A DNA stretch of 64,000 nucleotides from the NCBI GenBank assembly GCA_964057225.1, contig OZ059894.1:9920001-9984000 (forward strand), in the 5' to 3' direction. Below the pieces are notes generated by a model. That model was not told the origin of the DNA. It saw only the letters and a list, made by a program, of their open reading frames with translations, and ran no database searches. Shown piece by piece: positions 189 through 28,900 of this stretch. The DNA comes from Auanema rhodensis (Eukaryota > Animalia > Nematoda). A program made the position numbers and the translations under genes. Positions within the stretch are counted from its first letter, which is position 1. Each line of letters opens with the position of its first letter.

Positions 189-2845
189 GTTAGTTACTTT
201 TTTCATTTTTTAAAATTAAAATGACTGGCTGACCTCAAATATTACTTTGTCTAACTAACTATATATGGAAATATGTATTACATCAAATACCTTTGACTTG
301 ATTTTCTATTTGAAATTTTAAAATATTAATCACATAAAGTATAAAAATAGGAAAATTTATTGTATTTCCCAACTAATCTCATTATAAATGTTTGAGCAAA
401 TAGCTCTTGCGGACAGGAGAACTCATGACGTAATTCCATATTCTCTTTCCTTTTTTCTTCTTCCACCCATTTAAAGCTGTGGATGAACTGCTACACAAAC
501 TTCCATGAAAGGTTTTTATACAAATCTCATTCTTCTTTTCAATCTACTAATCATTCTAAAACTTTCTATAATACCTTTTGTACTTTTGTTTTATCAAAAA
601 GAAATTTCCTTTTATCCCAAATTTATTGTTTTTCATTTTCTTCAACAATCTTTTTTTTTATTCATCATGTTTTTTCATGAATTTTTCCTTTTAAGTTGAG
701 ATCATGTCACTCTCTCTCTCTTTCTTTCTCTCTCTTTCTTTCTTTCTCTTTCTCTCTCTCTTACTTATCTACTCTGTCTCGTTTTCAGCTTAATCGTTAT
801 GGCATTTTCAATTTTTCCTCATATCTTTGAGCATAATGCTCCGATTTCTCTCTTGAGAATTCAATAGTTACTTTCTCTCTCTCTCTCTCTCTCTCTTTCC
901 TTCTCCCTCTCTATTCTGCTCCATTTCAGTTTTTTTCACGAAGAACTATTATCTAATATGTTTCTTATTTCATCAAATATTCCCAAAACATTTTTCTTTT
1001 GTCTTCTTGTTTTGATTTAATACTTTCGTCCAATTTTCATATAAATAGTTTCCAATTAATTTTTTAAATGAAATAATTGGAATATTTTTATAAAATGATT
1101 AATATACTATTAATGTACTATGATTATTATTATTTTTTTAAAATTAAATATATACCGTTATTAGTCTAAGATTAACTACTTTTATGATTTTAATTTTAGA
1201 AGAAAAAAAGTATTTTTATTTCTTATAATAATAATAAAATTATGTATTTCTTAAGAATATTTCTTTTTCTCGGATTAAAATGTGAAAAATGAAAATTCAA
1301 AGAGAGAGTGAAGCCTCCTATAAGGCTATTTCATTCTGTTGATCGTAGCATATGTATATCTGAGAATGATTTGAATACTTTGCTTTGCAAATGAAATGAT
1401 TGTTATTGATGTCTTTCACAGAGATATAGATTAATCTCTCATTTCTTACAATTTAGGTGAAGCTCAGTCATTTTCATCAAATAAGAGGAGAAATGAGATT
1501 GAGAGAATGAGGAAAAATGAAACTGAGAGAATATGAGAGAGAAATTAGAGAGAAAGAAAACGAAAGAGAGTGCGCAAAAGAAAAAAATTGTAGAAAAAGT
1601 GAGGGAAGCTGAATGCATAAGAGTGAAGGTTATGAGAGAGAGAGAGAGAGGGAAAAGGAATAAGATGAAAAAGAATGAGAGAGAGAGAGAGAACGACCGT
1701 TTGTTGCGACAACAAATGAAAAAAATGAAAAAAATTTTAAAGCTCACGTGAACGTTCACGTTCACGTAATAATTCAAATATCACTTGAACGAATGAACGT
1801 CATCGTAATGTACTCAAAACGAAAAGAAAATTGCATTGAGAATAAGAGAAACGATTGCTTATAATGAAAAGATATATAACATATCCTTGTTAAAATATTA
1901 ATATTAAACTATTACTATTTTTCTGAATAATTAGTATAGTTTATGCTAATTCATTCCAAAACCTTTCAGCAAATATCTATAGAAATTTCAAATTCGTAGT
2001 GATGTTTCAGATGAAAAGTTTAAATATCTCTTTAATGTTTTTCTTTTTTTTTTATTAATTTCCATATAATTCTAGGCAGTCGACTCATCAAATTGTCAGA
2101 ATTCTATTATATTATTTCGATCATTAAGCTCTATATGTGTAGTACTACTACTACTAGTAATATTTGAAATGCTGAAATACAACTTCTCTTACACAGTTTT
2201 TCATTAAAAAAATTTTTTTTTTAATTTTCGTGGTGAAACCATTTTCGTATGATATATATATATATATAATATATAATCTCTATAGAATATCAGATTAGCA
2301 TACTTTACTTTATGATCAGAGTAAGTTCGTTGCTCATTCTGAATAACTTACTCTGGAAGACGAAGTATTTTCATAGTTTCGATGATTTGAGGCGTGAATG
2401 TGTGAGAGCCTTTAGTTGAATAGTAGAAGTGTGCTATGCAACCAGAACTTTGCAATATAATTTTTATTAAAAAAAAACTTTTTTGTTATTCACGTTTCGA
2501 GTTGAAACTTTATGTTCTTGCAAGCTTATTGCTGTCGGCATCTAGTATTTAGAATTTGTCATCGTTTTTCTTCTGAATGCTTTTGTTAGTTATAGTTATT
2601 CTGAAGAAAGACGATTCCAAATATTATTCTTGGATATCTACTCTCATTGTTGTTCATCGTTCATAGCTTCAGCAAAAGAATTTTTTTCTGTTTTAATGTG
2701 CACTTAAGCTCGTTTCTCTGCTAATTCTTGATCTCCATTTCCTTTTTTTGAATTCATCCTACGAATCACTCTATCCTATTCCCTTTTGCAATGCTGTTCA
2801 CCTCTTTAACCAATTTCCTTTTAAATCTCTTTGTCTTTTACTTTC

Positions 2846-2893
<48 letters not shown>

Positions 2894-3286
2894 TCTCTTG
2901 TATTTGAACCCTTAGATCAGCAACAACTCTCGTATTACTTCGTTTTCCCTTTTTTGCTTCTTCACAAAGTATTTTGCCGTTGTTGTTATATCAATCACTT
3001 GAGTTTTCTTACACTCTCTGTAGTATGTTTTGTATAAACTTGAAAGAGTTTGAACATATCTCTATGTCTCTACTACTCTCTTCTGATGGATGTCGAAATA
3101 TGGCTTTCTCTTAAACTTGTTGAGCTCGTTGTCTTTAGACCGTGAGCCTGGACACCCCCACGGGCATCAGACATTCAAAGCAATATGGAGCGAATTGAGA
3201 GAGAAACGAGAGCAGATAAAGAGAGAAATAGAAAGATATCTCGTCGTTAACTAAAACTGAACCTTATGTCCTTTTCATCTCTCACT

Positions 3287-3330
<44 letters not shown>

Positions 3331-5920
3331 GTTTTGCTCATTTTCTATCCATCGAATACCCATATACATGTATGTTATCCTTAATGTTCTGTCATTTAGC
3401 AAGATTTTTGACTCAGGAAATTCCAGATGAAATGAAAAATATTCCCGTATTTCAGTTCAGTATATCCTTTTCTCAATTTCATTTACAAGAACAATTTGTA
3501 TTTACATATGTACATGCACATGTACATATACAACATGTGTAGTATGTCATATGAAACAACAACTAAACCTCAAACTCACTTCTAAAGAACAGCTACTAAT
3601 ATGCTTTTAGAATTTATTTACTTTTCTCTTATATCACCAATCTTAGCTCATTTTTATTTTTCTAACAAAAACTTGTCGAGCATCATCCTCATCATCAGTT
3701 CTACTCCTTCAAAATGAAAAAATCCCATATTTGTCATCAATTTCTTCAACTATTATTCGTGCTATTCCTTCGATTTCCATGAAAAAAATTATTCCAATTA
3801 GCTAATAAATCCAAAAGAATTCTTGTCCAGTATATATAGACATATAAATATATATTTATAGAATTATTTTATTTATTTCTAGAGGCTAAAATTATTTTTT
3901 TCTTATTCAAACGCTCACATTCAACCCTTTTTTTTTGGTATTGTTTAACCTTTTCTTCTCATTTATTTTGTTTAAATAATGCTGAAAAGTTGCATAATTT
4001 TTTATACTTTTCTTTTTTAGACATAAAAATGTATAGTTTTTATATTTTTTTGTAACGTTTTTCTGTTTATTTTTTGCTTTTTCGATTATTTCTTATTTCG
4101 TTTTCTTCATTTTTCCTCTATATCCAAACAGACAACATGAGCCAAAAAATGACATATTATATGACTTGATAACTAGAATATTAGTTTTATTCACAAATTG
4201 GTTGTTTTTTCTTTTTTTAAAATAGATTTATACGAAAATGCTCTCTTATCACAGTTATATTCAAAAAATAAAAATCCATCAGATACATCAAGAGAGAGAG
4301 AGAAAGAGAGTTTTAAGTTTGTTCAATACAAATCAAAACATTGTGTACAAACAACATGCTCGAATGCGATTTTGTTTTTCTTTATTTCCTTTTTGCTTTA
4401 CAAGGTACAACTCCATTTTCACGTGAAACTATGTGCCGAAGAGCTTGAAGAGATCATTGTGTATGTCTGGGGCGCATGCTGCTGATGTTGCAACATCAAC
4501 AACTCCCTCCCCCGCCCGCTTCTTCTTCATTCCTGGTTGCATTGAACATAATCCCTTCTCATCACTTCATTCTTTACTGCTCAACTAGTATTCTCAGTAA
4601 ATCATTTGCGTCTTCCAATACTAGCTCAGTACTCATGCTCTGTTTTGGAATCACGATACCCCACTGAAATCGAAGTAGTTAGGAGATAGCGATTGTGTTG
4701 TAAGTCTGCATTCTTCCGGATCACAGCTTCTCCTCTCATCTAAGCAGCATAGCTTTTGGTCATTTGACAACTATTCTCTGCATTCTTATTGACTGAAAAA
4801 GGAGGAAGAGAACATAAACATGATAAAAAGAAACAAAAACTGAAGCATTTTTGGATAAAAATGAATAAAAAGACAAGGAAAATCAACGTTGCCAGACAAA
4901 TTATATAATCAGAAATGAGATCAAAGGAAACAGAAAAACATATATATATATTTCTCTTTAAAGGAAATGCCGTTAAAGATATTAGCCACAAGAAAGTAAA
5001 CGAATAAGAGATAGAGAGATAAAGAAACGGACAGAGTGGAAGGAAGTCGAGGAGCAGCTGGAGCTGAAGCTCGGCACTCAGTGGGAAAATCTGTGAAAAA
5101 GGCAATCTGATTAGACGCCAACGACACATGAGCTTTCTCTCCACCCCACTTTTCCTTCTATTCTCTTCGTTTCCTCTCTATTCGCTTTCTAGCCTCCTCT
5201 ATCTCATGCTTGCATATTGTCTCTGACTCTTTTAGTTTTACAGCATATCTCTCATTCTCTCTCTCCATATTTCTCTTTTTTTTCGGTCAACAAGCTATAC
5301 ATGTGCATATCCATTCAAAATACAACTTAAACAAGAATTATCACAAACCGATTAAGCTTTTCATGTCTATGACGCTTTTTCATATCTTAATATCTTCCTT
5401 ATTGATGTAATTCTGATTTTGACATGTTGTCTTCTTTCAAAAAACGTTTTCTATATTCACCTTCATTCACTAGACATATGTGGATTTCCTACCTTTAATA
5501 TTTGAAATCCTGCTAATCCTATTCAGCTTTTCCTCCCTCATTTCTTAGAAAAATCTCCCCAATATCATCAACATTTTCTAAAAAAGATGATGATGTAAAG
5601 ACGACGGTGACGAAAAAAAAAGAAAGAAAGCAAAGAGAAATATATGGAAAACTAATAAATTGGCCAGATTGTTGTTTGTTTGTATGATTGGCATCATCCA
5701 AGGAAACAACAAGCGGATGTCGCTTCGAAATAGGAAAATTATTATGAATATTCACCTTTCATGGAAATTCATTTGAATTTACATTGAAAAATCTACTTTT
5801 CTGTTTATCCAAATGTCATGTTGTTCCATGTTGGTTTTCGGTAAAACTCTAATATCATTTTCTTTTCTCACCTTATATCTTACCAATACATACTTTACTC
5901 TCTCTCTCTCTCTCTCTCTT

Positions 5921-5965
<45 letters not shown>

Positions 5966-6896
5966 CTCTCTTTCTGTGTTATCATAATCATTACAGTTTT
6001 TTTCTTTTAACATACAAAGTAAAGAAAATTTTATGTATTTACATACATATGGTTATGTGCTTTTGCATGTACACCTGTGTCTCATATTCATGAGAAAACT
6101 GCTTCAATAACTGTTTTTACGTAATTTTTTTTTCTCTTTCTCTCTCTCTCTCTTTCTCCCCCTCCCTCCCTCTCTCCCTCCCTCCCTCTCCCTCTCTCTA
6201 AGCATACCTCTGTACGCTTCACTGATAAAAAAATTTATTTTTAATATTTTGATAATTTTTCTCGATTCATTCAACTATTTTCCTTTCATAGTGTATGGAA
6301 ATATTAATTTTTGTTTTACAAACATCATACAATGAACATAATTTGAGTTTTTTTCTTTTTTTTTGTCAAAAAAACAACATGTAAGTGATCAGTAATATGG
6401 TTTTTATTCGATTTTTTTTTACTTTCTTGGCAAAATAAAGAAATAAGATCAGATATCATCACTGACCACTTTATGAAATGAAAGCATATTATTGGAATGA
6501 GAGAAGCAACTGATTTAACTCATCCTGATGGCTTCGTATGTTCCGACGAAATTTCAATCTTCAAATATTTCTTCTTCTTCTTCATCGTCTTCGTCTTCTT
6601 TTGCGTATTCTTTTGATTTCATTTGTTGATGATTCTTTTCGATTAAAAATTTAACATAAACTTTTCTTTTCTCATTTTTTACGAAAAAATCAATTTTCTT
6701 ATATTTTTAGTCTAATTCATCATCATTCTCTCATACCCTTTTGAGCTTAAAAATGCCAAATATAACGAAATAGCTATTAAGTTTTCCTCCTTTAATATTA
6801 TTATTATTATTGTTATTTTACTAATCACTTTAAGCATTTGCATAGAAAATATTCTGCAATATGTTTTAAGCTTCTATATTGATATTCTCTCCATCG

Positions 6897-6937
<41 letters not shown>

Positions 6938-9900
6938 ATTTGCTTCATTTTTTTTAACTTTTATACTTTGAGTCTTCTAAATCTCTTCAAGATTTCATAT
7001 TATATCAGGTTTGATGTTATAATTAGATATTCTTCACCATGTATGCATATGTATAGTTAGGTTTGAACTAAATATAGTTAGCTTTGCACCTAGAGATACT
7101 TTTCGTCGTTGTCGTCGTCGTCGGCGTCATTCATCCACATCTATCTCATCATGCTCTGTTCTCTTTTGAGGTTTTTCTACTATACTCATTCGTCTGTGTG
7201 TTTTTTCTTACAAACTGCTTGTCTTTGCTCTTCTTTATTCATTTTCAAAAAAAAACTTTTTTTGAAAATAAAAATGAACCAAGGTGCAGTGTGTGCAACC
7301 TATAAAGCTAGATATAGCATACAAAGAAATAAGAGAAAGTATATTGATCTAAAGGGCTTTGATTGTATTTGCTTCTGATCACAATTTCATCGGCTTCAGC
7401 AAATCTCAAACAGAGATACGAAGTTGATGATCTAGCTTCCGTCGGACAGAACCGTTGGCGACTGCTCAAACGATGTCAGAGTCATTGAGATTCTTCTTAA
7501 AACATTGCATCTATACATAATTAATTAATTAATCTACTTGAAGCAGAGATCTATGACATATTTCAATTTGAAAACTTAGCTGCAGTACTACAAGCTTAAT
7601 CTTCGTAGAGAACACTTCATTTCATTAACTTTAACGCTTTTTCAACTTGTTCCCTCGCTTTCTCTCTCTCTATCTCTCATTTCTCTTATGTCATATTCTC
7701 TCTCTATCTCTTTCTCTCTCTCAGATTCTTATTCTATTTTTCTTTCTTCACTTCATATCACTTCACATCAGGAACATTTACTAGGCAAATAAGTCCGCGT
7801 TGCAATCGTGGGCGACATCTGATCCTCTGGTCGTCATAATCAGAAGTCTGATACTATCCCTAACTATTATTATAAAGCAGTTATTATTCATATTAATTAT
7901 AAATTTTTGAAAAAAAAAACATCTATCTATCTATATTCGATGAAAACATAGAATTTATAATTTGGCCTTCTCACATAATATTTTTTATATTTTCTTCTAC
8001 TTATTTGATTATTAAAAATAATTTTTTAAGCCGATCAACTATAGATGCATAATTAATTATTCGCTCAATATATATATTAGTTAAAATATCGAGAAAATGG
8101 ATTATGATCTGCTGCAAGATCTTAATGAAGATCATCAATATGTAATGAAGGTCAGCCAGGACCATGAAAATTTCAAAAATCTCTTTTAAATTCTTTTCAT
8201 ATAGTTAATATAACTATGCATATATTCAGGGTGATATTGTATGCCTATCATGTGTTGCTTCGCACAATCGAGATGGCGTACTCGGATCTGAACGTGTCTG
8301 TCTGTGCACAGAAGGATTCGGTAATCGGATGTGTACGCTAGAAAATGTATCTGATAGGGTATGTGATTAGAAGCTCATTCACATCATCTGATGATCATTG
8401 TTTAAGGACATTCCACCTGATATTGCTATGTGTATGTTATACATTGACAATGCTTTATCAATGCGAGCTTTACAAGAGATGATGTCATCCGATTCTGAAC
8501 ATGTAAGCTTTGTTTGTTATTTTGTTTGTTGATTTTATGCTATTTTTAGACATCTGCTTCTGGTGCTGGAGGCCACAAAACCTTGTTGTATGGTCATGCA
8601 GTTCAATTGAAGCATGTTCAAAGTGAAATGGTACATTCATTAAGATATCCTGAGATCATAAATACAATGAAATTTCAGTTTCTTGCCTGTCTGTCCTCAT
8701 GCTCATCGAACGATAAGCTAGCTTTCGACGTTGGAGTACAAGAAACCAATACTGGTTCGTTCTATATTTGGAAAAACAAATATTATGATTATACCATACA
8801 TCATATACTATATCATATAGTATATAATCAATTTAACAGTTCTAACTTATATTATATGATATAGTTAAATATAACCATCATATGTCTATACAGGTGAAGC
8901 ATGCTGGTGGACTATTCATCCAGCTTCGAAACAACGATCAGAAGGAGAAAAAGTACGAGTTGGAGATGATGTAATTCTTGTTAGTGTAGCAACAGAACGA
9001 TATTTGGTCAGTTTCAATCAATAAATTATAAAATTTTCTATTTTTCTAGCATATGGCTTTTAATAAAAACTATATGGTAATTGCATCTTTCCATCAAACA
9101 CTTTGGAATATACAATCAGTTAGTTCGGGTAGCATGCGTACAAGGAATATGGGTATGTTATCATAATTTATATTAATTATATTAATTATATATTGATTTA
9201 GGTTTTCTTTTTGGTAATGATGTATTACGTCTCTTTCATGGTAATGATGAGTGCCTTACAATTCCTGAAAATTGGAGTGAACATCCTCAACATAAGTAAG
9301 TGTACTGTCTCAAATTAATGATTCTTTCTTCATTTTATCATTTCATTTACTTTTTTCTTTTAATTTGAAATTTGATTTACTGAAATTGCGCATAAAGCGT
9401 ATGTGAGTGCTTATCACGTGATGACGTCACGTCAATGCTTTGTTATGCATTCACTCATTCATTATGCTAATTAGATTCATTTTAAACTGAAATAGAAGGG
9501 AATACGGTTGATTATCAATAATCAATAATCTATATGATATACATATAAAAATAATTTTATTTCTTATAGTATGGTCATATATGAAGGTGGTGCTGCAGTT
9601 AATCAAGCTAGATCATTATGGCGAATTGAATTAGTTCGAACCAAATGGCATGGTGCTCTAGTTGGATGGGAACAAGTATTCAGGATAAAACATATCACTA
9701 GTGGAAGGTAAATTCTATTTATATATATATATATAGTTAGAATAATAATAATAATAATAATATATAATCAATATTAATACAGATATCTTGGTGTGCTTGA
9801 AAATGCTGTTCAGCTGTATCATAAAGATAAAGCCGATTTTGATTTGACGGCATTCGTTATGAGTCAGAATAAAGATCCGAAAAAACAAATGTTAGAAGAG

Positions 9901-24900: not shown

Positions 24901-25729
24901 GAAGGATAAACATGCTAATAGCATTGTTATTGCTTGTTTGAAGAGGCTTTTGCCTGTTGGACTCAATGTATTCGGTGGAAGAGAATTGGATATCGTTCAA
25001 CAGTCCAAAGAAAAATTCGTTCAAAAGGAACAAGAAGAAAAGATTCGTGAATTCATTAAAGGTTTATTAGATATTCCGGTTAAAGTATGTTTTAATGATT
25101 GTTAACTATATCATATATTTATATAATAGACTGATCCAACTGATAAAAATGCTTGGCAATTATCATTATATCGAAAAATTGGAAAAAGTCAGATGAGAGG
25201 AAAAGATGAGATGACCCAAGATGGTGTCATTGAAAAAATCTTCAATATGGGACAAGTTTCGGCTATTCTTCATACAGTAAGTTATTATCTTTTCTTCATT
25301 TTACATATATTTTAAAACAAAAAATTTGAAAAAAACAAACATTTGAAAATATCTGAAGTCTGAGGATAAAGGGGTTCGGTTTGTGCTTAGTTCAGTATTC
25401 TAGTGATATGCTATTTGAGGTCTAGTTTCAGTTTGTAGTGCGATTATCAAAGTTTTTGTGTGTGTTTTTAGTTTTTATTTGTGTCTATTAGAGACGTTTT
25501 GATGTGAGATTATAACATATATTTTGTATTTTTTTTAAAATTAAAATCAAAAAGAAAAGAAGAAAATTAGATGAAAATCCCTAAGAAAAAGGGAAATTAA
25601 CCAAAGTGTTTGTTTGCATTGAGTGTCCGTAGATTATGTGTTCTTGTCTTAGATAACACGTGTAAAGGATCGGAAACGTCAACGCTTCTTCATAAAGGTA
25701 AGATCATTCTTTATGTTTATTTACATCTA

Positions 25730-25769
<40 letters not shown>

Positions 25770-25889
25770 TACATCATCATTAGCATTTTCATCATAATCA
25801 CACACACAATACCTATTTTACCACACATTTTGCTTTATGTTTTGAACTTTGAAAAGCATAATAAGCTTGTAATATGCTTCACAATAACT

Positions 25890-25923
<34 letters not shown>

Positions 25924-28900
25924 GACACAAGCTTGCCAGCCAAATGCAACAGCATATAATAGATATCATAGATTCACACACATATTATATACATTTATAG
26001 CATATAATTAAATATATATTATACTATATATGATATAGTTAACATATATATATATTGTATAAACATTTTCTTTTTTTTTTGCATCCCTTAGCAGTATTTT
26101 AACGCTTAATTTCTTAACAGTATGACAAATATGGAAATCGACGATTTGATGCTAATGCTAGCATTTTCGACTTAAATACTGTAAGTATTTATTTGAGATG
26201 AAGCTTTCATAATGTCCTTGAATTTCCCTTTTTTCAATTTTACCATTCTTCTTCTAACAACCAATACTTTCTTAGTTAGTTTATAGTAGAAAGAGCAGTT
26301 ATTCCTTTGATTTTGAAACTTTTCTGTTCGTTTAGCTTGACATGGAATTTTTCGTTCGTTTAGCTTTAGTTTGATCCCTCCGACTTCTAATAATATTCAT
26401 TCAAAGTCACTTATGTGATTGAAACAAAACAAAAATCAAAAAATTATAACCTAATTCTTCTTTTTTCCTTTTCTCTATCAGTCAATAGCATGTTGATTTG
26501 CTTTCATATCATTCACACAATCACACAATTTTCACTTTTTCTCCAATTCCGATTGAACATCTTCACATTGTTTTTGTGTTTTAGACAGAACATCCGCAGA
26601 ATTTGCTGTCTCAAGCATGGAAAAAAGTTGTTTCAACACAACGGAAACGAGCTGTGGTAGCTTGCTTCCGTATGGTTCCTCTGTACAGCATACCAAGGTG
26701 ATCTACTCAAAAGCTTGAACTTCACAATTTTTATTTTTTCCCTTTTTGGTGATTTTCTGAATTTCCCCGTTGCTACCCTGGTTACATAATATTCCTTTTC
26801 TCATGTTAATCAACCATGAGTAGATATGATTAGACAAAAATTATTCTTCATCCATTTGTTCCGATTGCTCGCATGAAATCGCTTTTTCCTCGAAGATATG
26901 TGTATGTGTGTTTGCTTAACGCTGATTGGCTGCTTAAATGTTATTGTATCCGAGATACCGTAACCGAACTGCGGCTATTGGTTTATGTGTGTGCATGTTT
27001 GAAATAGTTTTGTATGACCGACAACCGACGACTCAGACCTCAAAATTGGATTTTATTTCGAAATTGGTTGATATTAACTCGTTTGATCGGGGAAAGTATG
27101 AGTAAAGACATGCATGTAATAGGTGACGAGTCGCCCGGAAAAAGAAGATAAATGGAAGAAAGTGCTAACTCTTCAACGAAAGAGAATGGCTATTTCTCTC
27201 ATAACAGCTTCTCATCTCTATAAAGTGGAGTTGTAAGTTTGATATTCAGTCTTTCTATTTCTCTCTCTCTCTCTCTCTTTCCAACATTTGGTTTTCCTGT
27301 GAAATGCTTTTCAACCTTTTATGCTTGTGATACCAATATGCAGAATGTGCTTATACCCTCAAGCACTAACCTTTCTTTTTGTTTGAATTATTCTCTTTAT
27401 AGAAGAGAATAAACTCTCTCTTCATCTTTCAAAAGGTTAATTTCTCTTTTAGACATCGTGGTATCAACTTTTTCCTTCCGGCATTTTCAAAGTTGTGGTT
27501 AGAAGAAGAGGATGCAGGTCAAGATAAACTGATCGCTGAACTTTGTGTATGATCATAAGCATTTTTTCACTTCAAATCGGATGTTTTTCAGAGTGGAATC
27601 GAAGAAGATGATTTACCTCGAATTGAGGTAATCGTCGAAGATGGTGTCCTTGTTACTACTCCGTCGGAGGAGAACAAAGAAAAAGAGTTAGTTTAACAAC
27701 GATATACCATCTCATATTTCTACTTGTTTAGCGCTCATCCTGATCCGTTGCGTCAACTTATTCAATGTTTTCAACGTGCTGCTACTAGTGAAGAGAGTCA
27801 AGCTACTCCTATTCATGATGATGCTCTATATATTCGTTTCGCTGAAGTTATGGCTCAGTCTATCCATATTGAAGAAGAAGATGGGGAGGACGGTGATGAA
27901 GGCGAAATCGATCAAGCTGTATGTTTTTCATCGCTCCTATGTTATACACGATATTTCGTTGCAGCAAAAGGAGGAACAGTCTCAAGCTTTACGTGCAGAG
28001 CAAGGAGTTCTTGCTAATCGCGGTGCAGCTATCATGTGTTTGATGTATCTCTCAGCTTCAAATGGAGAGCCTAACGATATGGTTGCTCAGACATTGCAAC
28101 TTGGAATCCATTTGTTAAGCGGAGGAAACGTCGAAATTCAAAGAGTACCGAGCTAATTTAAGATTTTAAAATCACATTTCGTGTATTTTCAGATGCTCAT
28201 CGAATACCTTCAATTGAAAAAAGATGTCAGATTCTTCACATCCTTAGCTGGATTGATGAATAAGTGCTCAGTTTTGAATTTGGAAATGTTCGAACGTCAA
28301 ATTAAGGTGAATACCAATCATGAACATGAGTATTTAATCTTAATACTCGCATCTCTTTCAGGCTGAAGGTCTTGGTATGGGTGCAGAGCTAGCAGCTGGT
28401 GATAATCAGAATCTCAACGATGCTGACTTTACCTGTTCTCTGTTCCGCTTCTTGCAATTGACATGCGAAGGACACAATCTTGGTTTAAACTTGCTATATC
28501 AAGACAAACAGTGATTCCCTTCATTTCAGAATTCCAAAATTACCTTCGAACCCAACCAGGTCATACTACAAGTGTTAACTTAATCAACTGCACTGTCGAT
28601 TATCTTTTACGACTCCAGGAATCTGTTATGGATTTCTATTGGCATTATTCCAGCAAAGAAGTCATTGACGAAGGAGGAAAAGAATATTTCTTAAGAGCAA
28701 TCCAAGTTTGTAGTCAAGTTTTCAATACTTTGACTGAAAGCATCCAGGTTTGAACTAATTTAAATGCTTGAAAACAACCTTTAAACTTTGAAGGGTCCAT
28801 GCGTTGGCAATCAGATGACTTTAGCAAATTCTCGTTTATGGGATGCTATTAATGGATTTTTCTTCTTATTTGCTCACATGATGGAGAAATTATATAAGAA

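Follow-up and report, generated by a model that had tools for sequence, protein, structure and literature searches.

Two versions of the calmodulin-site helix encoded by tandem-duplicated, very probably mutually exclusive exons in the ryanodine receptor gene of the nematode Auanema rhodensis

In vertebrate ryanodine receptors (RyRs), residues 3614-3643 of RyR1 represent the main site for calmodulin (CaM) and S100A1. In structures of RyR CaM peptides a Trp and a Phe serve as 1-17 anchors, with a reactive Cys located beside the Phe, and the helix is a major regulatory handle of the channel for CaM, S100A1 and modification of the cysteine. Vertebrates diversify the CaM region of their RyRs via three genes and are not known to exchange the helix. 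The present analysis concerns a stretch of 64,000 nucleotides from the nematode Auanema rhodensis (assembly GCA_964057225.1, contig OZ059894.1, positions 9,920,001 to 9,984,000 of the forward strand), referred to as the window, which carries a complete RyR gene orthologous to unc-68 of Caenorhabditis elegans. Two exons of this single gene, termed A and B, very probably are tandem-duplicated, frame-locked mutually exclusive exons providing two versions of the CaM-site helix.

Insects, like nematodes, diversify a single RyR gene by mutually exclusive exons, but the insect pair encodes part of the second SPRY domain (SPRY2) and is located far N-terminal, unlike the nematode helix pair. In some species the insect CaM-site exon is apparently subject to alternative splicing (Troczka et al. 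2018, PMC6026295), an event which, unlike A/B, is not described as a duplicated pair. In case of unc-68, exons 1.1/1.2 as well as exons 10, 12 and 13 in divergent region 2 were studied by Marques et al. 2020 (PMC7644089); like A/B, these are alternative exons of the single nematode RyR gene, and they were found to yield tissue-specific isoforms whose functions are separable. The same paper mentions "five further alternative exons" in the unc-68 gene model, and calmodulin is absent from it. Martinez-Gomez et al. 2022 (PMC9741552) include unc-68 among the genes for which a tandem duplicated exon substitution event is annotated, the exons not being named; as the gene has no such pair other than A/B, this event is probably A/B. 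The C. elegans gene unc-68 (K11C4.5) and C. briggsae L3Y34_008632 represent the same gene with the same slot, reaching from ..AILH(T/V) to HRGINFF. The splicing event is thus already known at the annotation level, and the supposed novelty of the switch in the original prediction did not hold: exon B is used in four C. elegans isoforms and in an Auanema model, and C. briggsae has annotations for both isoforms. No open paper describing or interpreting a swap of the CaM helix in nematodes was found, the subscription literature (e.g., the unc-68 gene-structure papers of 1997-2002) lying outside the search.

The gene and the exons of the slot are arranged as follows (coordinates refer to the window):

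129-32880, + strand: complete ryanodine receptor gene (unc-68 orthologue), placed by tblastn with the RyR of Auanema sp. JU1783
25130-25276, + strand: constitutive upstream exon, ending with ..SAILHT on a codon boundary (phase 0), conserved in all loci
25653-25697, + strand: candidate cassette exon c1, 45 nt, phase 0-0, basic 15-aa peptide, good splice sites
26121-26180, + strand: candidate cassette exon c2, 60 nt, phase 0-0, 20-aa peptide, good splice sites
26585-26697, + strand: exon A, 113 nt, entered in phase 0 and left in phase 2, preceded by ttttAG and followed by GTGATC
27123-27232, + strand: exon B, 110 nt, entered in phase 0 and left in phase 2, preceded by taatAG and followed by GTAAGT
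27453-27546, + strand: constitutive downstream exon, its first base completing the split codon of A or B before HRGINFF, present in all loci

Re-reading of the sequence reproduced the coordinates, lengths, phases, AG/GT borders and translations originally given for both exons. Exon A comprises 37 codons plus 2 nt and exon B 36 codons plus 2 nt; position 25276 is joined in frame to 27453 via A alone or via B alone. Inclusion of both exons (113 + 110 = 223 nt) results in a frameshift, as does the skipping of both, and the A-B joint in the window reads AG|G TGA, i.e., an immediate stop, bearing out the claim that exactly one of the two is required. That A and B are duplicates is supported by an all-against-all comparison of 578 stop-free + strand fragments of the gene region, in which the pair was recovered with an E-value of 6e-4 and proved to be the sole tandem homologous exon pair in the gene apart from the known RyR-repeat and SPRY domain repeats.

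As predicted from the DNA, the core from W to LY aligns between the two exons free of gaps (10 of 23 residues identical), and positions 16/17 are occupied by C/F in exon A and by L/I in exon B. Exon A carries the anchors W1/F17 and a net charge of +6. Its identification as the RyR CaM-binding helix was corroborated by matches to solved receptors (RyR2 3576-3611, E 2e-9; also RyR1 3609-3645) and to CaM-bound RyR peptides (2BCX_B, E 4e-8; 6Y4O_B, E 1.5e-6), the CaM domains of vertebrate RyR1 and RyR2 (PDB 2BCX, 6Y4O) sharing with exon A the Trp, the Cys-Phe pair and PLY (E 2e-9 to 1e-6). Exon B (net charge +5) combines W1/I17 with L5 and I14, the aromatic Phe being gone; it retains the Trp, the QRKR cluster and hydrophobic residues at positions 1, 5, 14 and 17, and is devoid of Cys, Phe and the helix-breaking Pro. 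Thus, both exons display bulky hydrophobic residues at positions 1 and 17 in a basic amphipathic helix pattern, and the Cys beside the second anchor (equivalent to RyR1 C3635) is present in A and replaced by Leu in B. B exons of panagrolaimids contain a Cys four residues downstream of the position of the Cys in A. C. elegans is not known to have a nitric oxide synthase of its own, and regulation by NO is the least supported element of the original prediction. Since the hydrophobic residues at 1, 5, 14 and 17 and the basic QRKR cluster are kept, the B helix probably still binds CaM. Against this speaks that exon B alone retrieved no RyR chain among solved structures at E-values up to 10; its homology to the CaM site is based on position, phase and similarity to exon A.

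The exon B frame read from the A. rhodensis DNA recurs in related nematodes. A 57-aa query peptide (exon B plus downstream exon) matched a Teladorsagia circumcincta model whose first residues lie within exon B and in which the exon B donor is spliced to the downstream exon, as well as one open reading frame (ORF) on a metagenome contig; a metagenome scan with an exon B alignment added two further loci, and the genomic loci of Loa loa, Caenorhabditis nigoni (the Caenorhabditis genome used for locus comparison) and Halicephalobus were reached via full-length RyR models. Loa loa, C. nigoni, Halicephalobus and two metagenome nematodes all have the A-B tandem with unchanged exon lengths and borders. 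Exon B measures 110 nt with AG/GT borders in all seven genomic loci, and exon A 113 nt, 5' of B, in six of them, i.e., wherever the sequence is uninterrupted; in Teladorsagia B is seen alone, directly downstream of a 3.5-kb run of N (assembly gap).

Nei-Gojobori counts yielded proportions of synonymous (pS) and non-synonymous (pN) differences of 0.59-1.0 (saturated) and 0.02-0.29, respectively, for exon B, and of 0.69-0.95 and 0.05-0.39 for exon A. Between the window and Teladorsagia, 21 of the 110 bases of exon B differ, with 16 codons changed synonymously and only 2 non-synonymously. In the alignment of nine exon B sequences 23 of 36 columns are invariant, and the 20-residue core ending with (S/C)HLY is identical in all nine except for the one S/C position. 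Judged by these substitution patterns, purifying selection acts strongly on both exons across Spirurina, Tylenchina and Rhabditina. Each exon has an invariant motif of its own, that of A holding apart from the divergent metagenome copy L002, which argues for two distinct functions over redundancy.

In the intron-poor soil nematode represented by L002 (JGI metagenome 3300013296), exon A (L002:2335-2447) has the sequence RSGNGRGVSNHRRRAIVACFRVVPLYGIP, lacking the Trp anchor and KK..QRKR, and is much more diverged than exon B and the neighbouring exons. Exon B of L002 shares 86 % identity with that of the window (89 % over residues 2-36).

Use of exon B in spliced form is indicated by two transcript-like contigs. 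The JGI contig L005 (11.3 kb) contains a single ORF of 3716 aa that reaches the true RyR C-terminus, and it shares 78-100 % identity per aligned block (most blocks at least 90 %) with Halicephalobus genomic DNA. All 12 gaps between the aligned blocks of the Halicephalobus locus are closed in L005, the contig joining ..VVAILHT, exon B and HRGINYF and skipping a genomic interval of 934 nt that holds c1 and exon A. The same upstream-B-downstream join is present in the Logan contig L007 (ERR406857, 13.3 kb), which is nearly all ORF. Among protein entries, the C. briggsae gene L3Y34_008632 provides both forms: ULT90419.1 carries B, ULT90420.1 carries c1 plus A, and the two differ only at the A/B slot and at one other cassette. 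The UNC-68 entries Q94279, B7WN66, I2HAA6 and A0A2C9C325 of C. elegans are B-type (four of four among the isoforms listed), and no A-type C. elegans isoform was present among the 15 of 51 cluster members listed. The model of Auanema sp. JU1783 uses B and skips A, c1 and c2, with window positions 27123-27233 being 97 % identical to its residues 3829-3865.

An optional 31-aa cassette that likewise distinguishes C. briggsae isoforms is located between EMFERQIK and AEGLGMGA (P0018, residues ~4106-4137); the matching intron of the window (~28307-28365) is too short to hold it.

An exon-type census covered 49 proteins scored around the site, 37 of them nematode RyR entries. Exon B only is found in 13 of the 37, with entries from Bursaphelenchus, Aphelenchoides, Auanema, Mesorhabditis spiculigera, C. 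angaria, C. japonica, C. nigoni, C. briggsae (two), Globodera, Pristionchus entomophagus, Steinernema and Panagrolaimus and one Logan contig. Eighteen entries contain exon A only; 15 of these are full models (M. belari, Nippostrongylus, Angiostrongylus costaricensis, Necator, Haemonchus, Parascaris, P. mayeri, C. bovis, one C. briggsae isoform and six filarial models), the other three being the Dirofilaria entry P0040 (A plus a frame-shifted B) and two truncated Caenorhabditis models. Both exons, or misread parts of both, appear in Toxocara, Halicephalobus, A. fujianensis, Heterodera, Parastrongyloides and Angiostrongylus cantonensis, and Syphacia muris has B preceded by unrecognised sequence. 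Since the Dirofilaria model translates exon B in the wrong frame and B is intact in the Loa genome, filariae have B too.

The RyRs of non-nematodes (starfish, fishes, bird, shrimp) and of the enoplean nematodes Trichinella and Romanomermis are A-type. In Trichinella nativa (LVZM01010708.1, L011:1123-1294), ~57 nt separate exon A from the downstream exon, leaving no room for B. A B-type sequence from outside the nematodes was found neither among the 49 scored proteins nor in a profile search with exon B against 1.84 billion representatives, the latter retrieving four fragment matches, too few to map the distribution. Because Trichinella and the non-nematode (echinoderm, vertebrate) RyRs carry only A-type sequence, A is, judged by this distribution, the ancestral, vertebrate-like exon; B would then have originated by duplication within Chromadorea, later than the Enoplea-Chromadorea split, unless Trichinella lost it. 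The roles implied for the two exons in the original prediction need to be revised to this extent: A is ancestral, but B is the exon of the reference models. The UniParc entry UPI0006012F4E (P0082) has a divergent B-type exon (WKRVLTAQRKRLVCALITTIHLYKLEK) that contains a Cys and is between the A and B motifs, preceded by a frame-shifted exon A; it may originate from an early-branching chromadorean.

The splice sites of the two exons are asymmetric in all species, with a consensus acceptor and a weak donor for A (donors GTGATC, GTATGG, GTATTA and GTACCC) and a poor acceptor and a strong donor for B (GTAAGT or GTAAGC in six of seven genomes). This asymmetry suggests that the choice between the exons may be regulated. 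The A-B intron of the window (26698-27122) has three copies of the Fox-1/ASD-1 core GCATG, one of them 11 nt before exon B, and that of Loa loa (L008:23930-24908) likewise has three, as compared to ~0.3-0.5 expected copies.

An unbiased scan of the intron between the upstream exon and exon A returned c1 and c2 as the only candidates. Cassettes resembling c1 occur in isoforms or models of C. briggsae, C. remanei, C. bovis, Nippostrongylus, Panagrolaimus, Steinernema and Parastrongyloides, and a c1 homologue is also present in the Halicephalobus intron. In those models c1 is joined to A, except for Steinernema (c1 directly before B) and the mis-modelled Parastrongyloides (A plus B), which hints at a possibly coordinated splicing of c1 and A. 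A cassette at the position of c2 (YNRKQHLTQMNNSD) is contained in C. briggsae models and in the C. nigoni intron, the sequence similarity being weak.

Several points count against mutually exclusive use of A and B in a regulated manner. The enrichment of GCATG is not conserved, with 0-1 copies in the A-B intron of four other species, and among the loci compared neither convincing inverted repeats for docking/selector pairing nor a conserved regulatory motif were found. The contigs L005 and L007 were classified as transcript-like by their lack of introns, not by sample metadata, and many of the A-only and B-only proteins are automatic gene models, not cDNAs. The models of Toxocara, Heterodera and Halicephalobus read both exons. 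The Auanema reads, four small runs of uncertain type from one study, contain 0.18-0.30 of the sampled words, a fraction that could reflect either two or three exons or thin DNA coverage.

Exon B could be a decayed pseudo-exon that is never spliced, considering its shortness (37 codons), the stops on both sides, the poor acceptor taatAG and the ~5 % chance of an open frame of its length (estimated from ~32 % G+C). Yet the same 110 nt, the same borders and a near-identical core of 20 residues are preserved in nine sequences of three suborders in the face of saturated synonymous change, and B is used in the four C. elegans UNC-68 isoforms, the Auanema model and the two mRNA-like contigs. On account of this conservation, the purifying selection and the use in C. 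elegans isoforms, the pseudo-exon was rejected, its probability being practically nil. The converse case, B being effectively constitutive in A. rhodensis and A an unused relic without any real switch, could be made from the Auanema sp. JU1783 model, the four C. elegans isoforms, L005 and L007, all of which contain B only, and from the weak donor GTGATC of exon A. It is nevertheless very unlikely. The sequence of exon A is intact: its acceptor is strong, its length of 113 nt is shared with five other genomes, and pN is low against saturated pS. A-isoforms are annotated in C. briggsae (where one gene gives rise to the A and the B isoform), C. remanei, C. bovis, Nippostrongylus, Haemonchus, Necator and filariae. 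Such constancy of frame, borders and invariant motif across suborders would not be expected of an exon that is out of use.

A further function of the pair as an on/off device has a somewhat better, though still low, probability. In this case, inclusion of A plus B or retention of the intron after A would deliberately introduce a stop, leading to nonsense-mediated decay or to a channel-less cytoplasmic fragment of ~3,800 aa. The A-B joint runs into an immediate stop (second codon) in five of the seven loci (window, C. nigoni, Halicephalobus, L004 and, by deduction, Teladorsagia), and RyR models ending with ..PLYGIPR*, the product expected from A plus B inclusion or from intron retention after A, are deposited for two C. 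briggsae strains (P0062, P0068), C. nigoni (P0042, P0057) and C. auriculariae (P0041). However, in Loa and L002 the stop follows only ~15 codons later, and the truncated entries possibly are gene-prediction artefacts or reflect immature RNA; the C. nigoni gene is simply split into two models at the PLYGIPR* point (L009:21562-21961).

For the favoured mutually exclusive pair, one may envisage that tissue-specific splicing factors set the choice between A and B, which would fit the conserved splice-site asymmetry, and that A or B is used in combination with one or two optional cassettes upstream. A retained but altered binding of CaM, with a different affinity or calcium dependence, might then coincide in B with the absence of a reactive cysteine to modify, and A and B isoforms would thus differ in CaM/redox control of calcium release. 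A more far-reaching possibility, which is put forward tentatively and judged somewhat doubtful, is that B has taken the place of A in the principal RyR isoform of chromadoreans, and that particular cells retain A, mostly along with c1; channels of qualitatively different CaM/oxidation control would result, e.g., a cysteine-free B channel lacking the oxidation site of A.

When reference UNC-68 is aligned to human RyRs it carries the divergent B, and the conserved Cys/Phe motif resides in the alternative exon, which bears on disease modelling, on calmodulin-mutation studies and on research into the oxidation of UNC-68 during ageing. Peptides or mutations based on the canonical UNC-68 isoform probe B. 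Calcium-dependent CaM binding to a "predicted" UNC-68 CaM-domain peptide was described by Jensen et al. 2023 (PMC10244212). The approach of exon deletion and two-colour reporters of Marques et al. 2020 is directly applicable to A/B. The site is also a recurrent source of annotation errors (Toxocara, Heterodera, Dirofilaria, C. nigoni and Teladorsagia), where both exons are read or the model is split or cut at ..GIPR*.

With respect to the gene as a whole, residues 1-5197 of the Auanema sp. JU1783 RyR (CAI4225083.1, P0008, 5197 aa) were all placed by tblastn over window positions 129-32880, with ~90-100 % identity at the exon level. Its 5' end is organized as follows:

129-188, + strand: first coding exon of the RyR gene, followed by an intron of ~8 kb (189-8229) and many exons from 8230 to 32880

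Since C. elegans unc-68 uses two promoters with alternative first exons, the ~8 kb intron may be the home of a second first exon. The intron between c1 and c2 contains (CAT)n and (CA)n microsatellites at 25730-25770 and 25885-25920, and an AT-rich stretch (26002-26039) adjoins.

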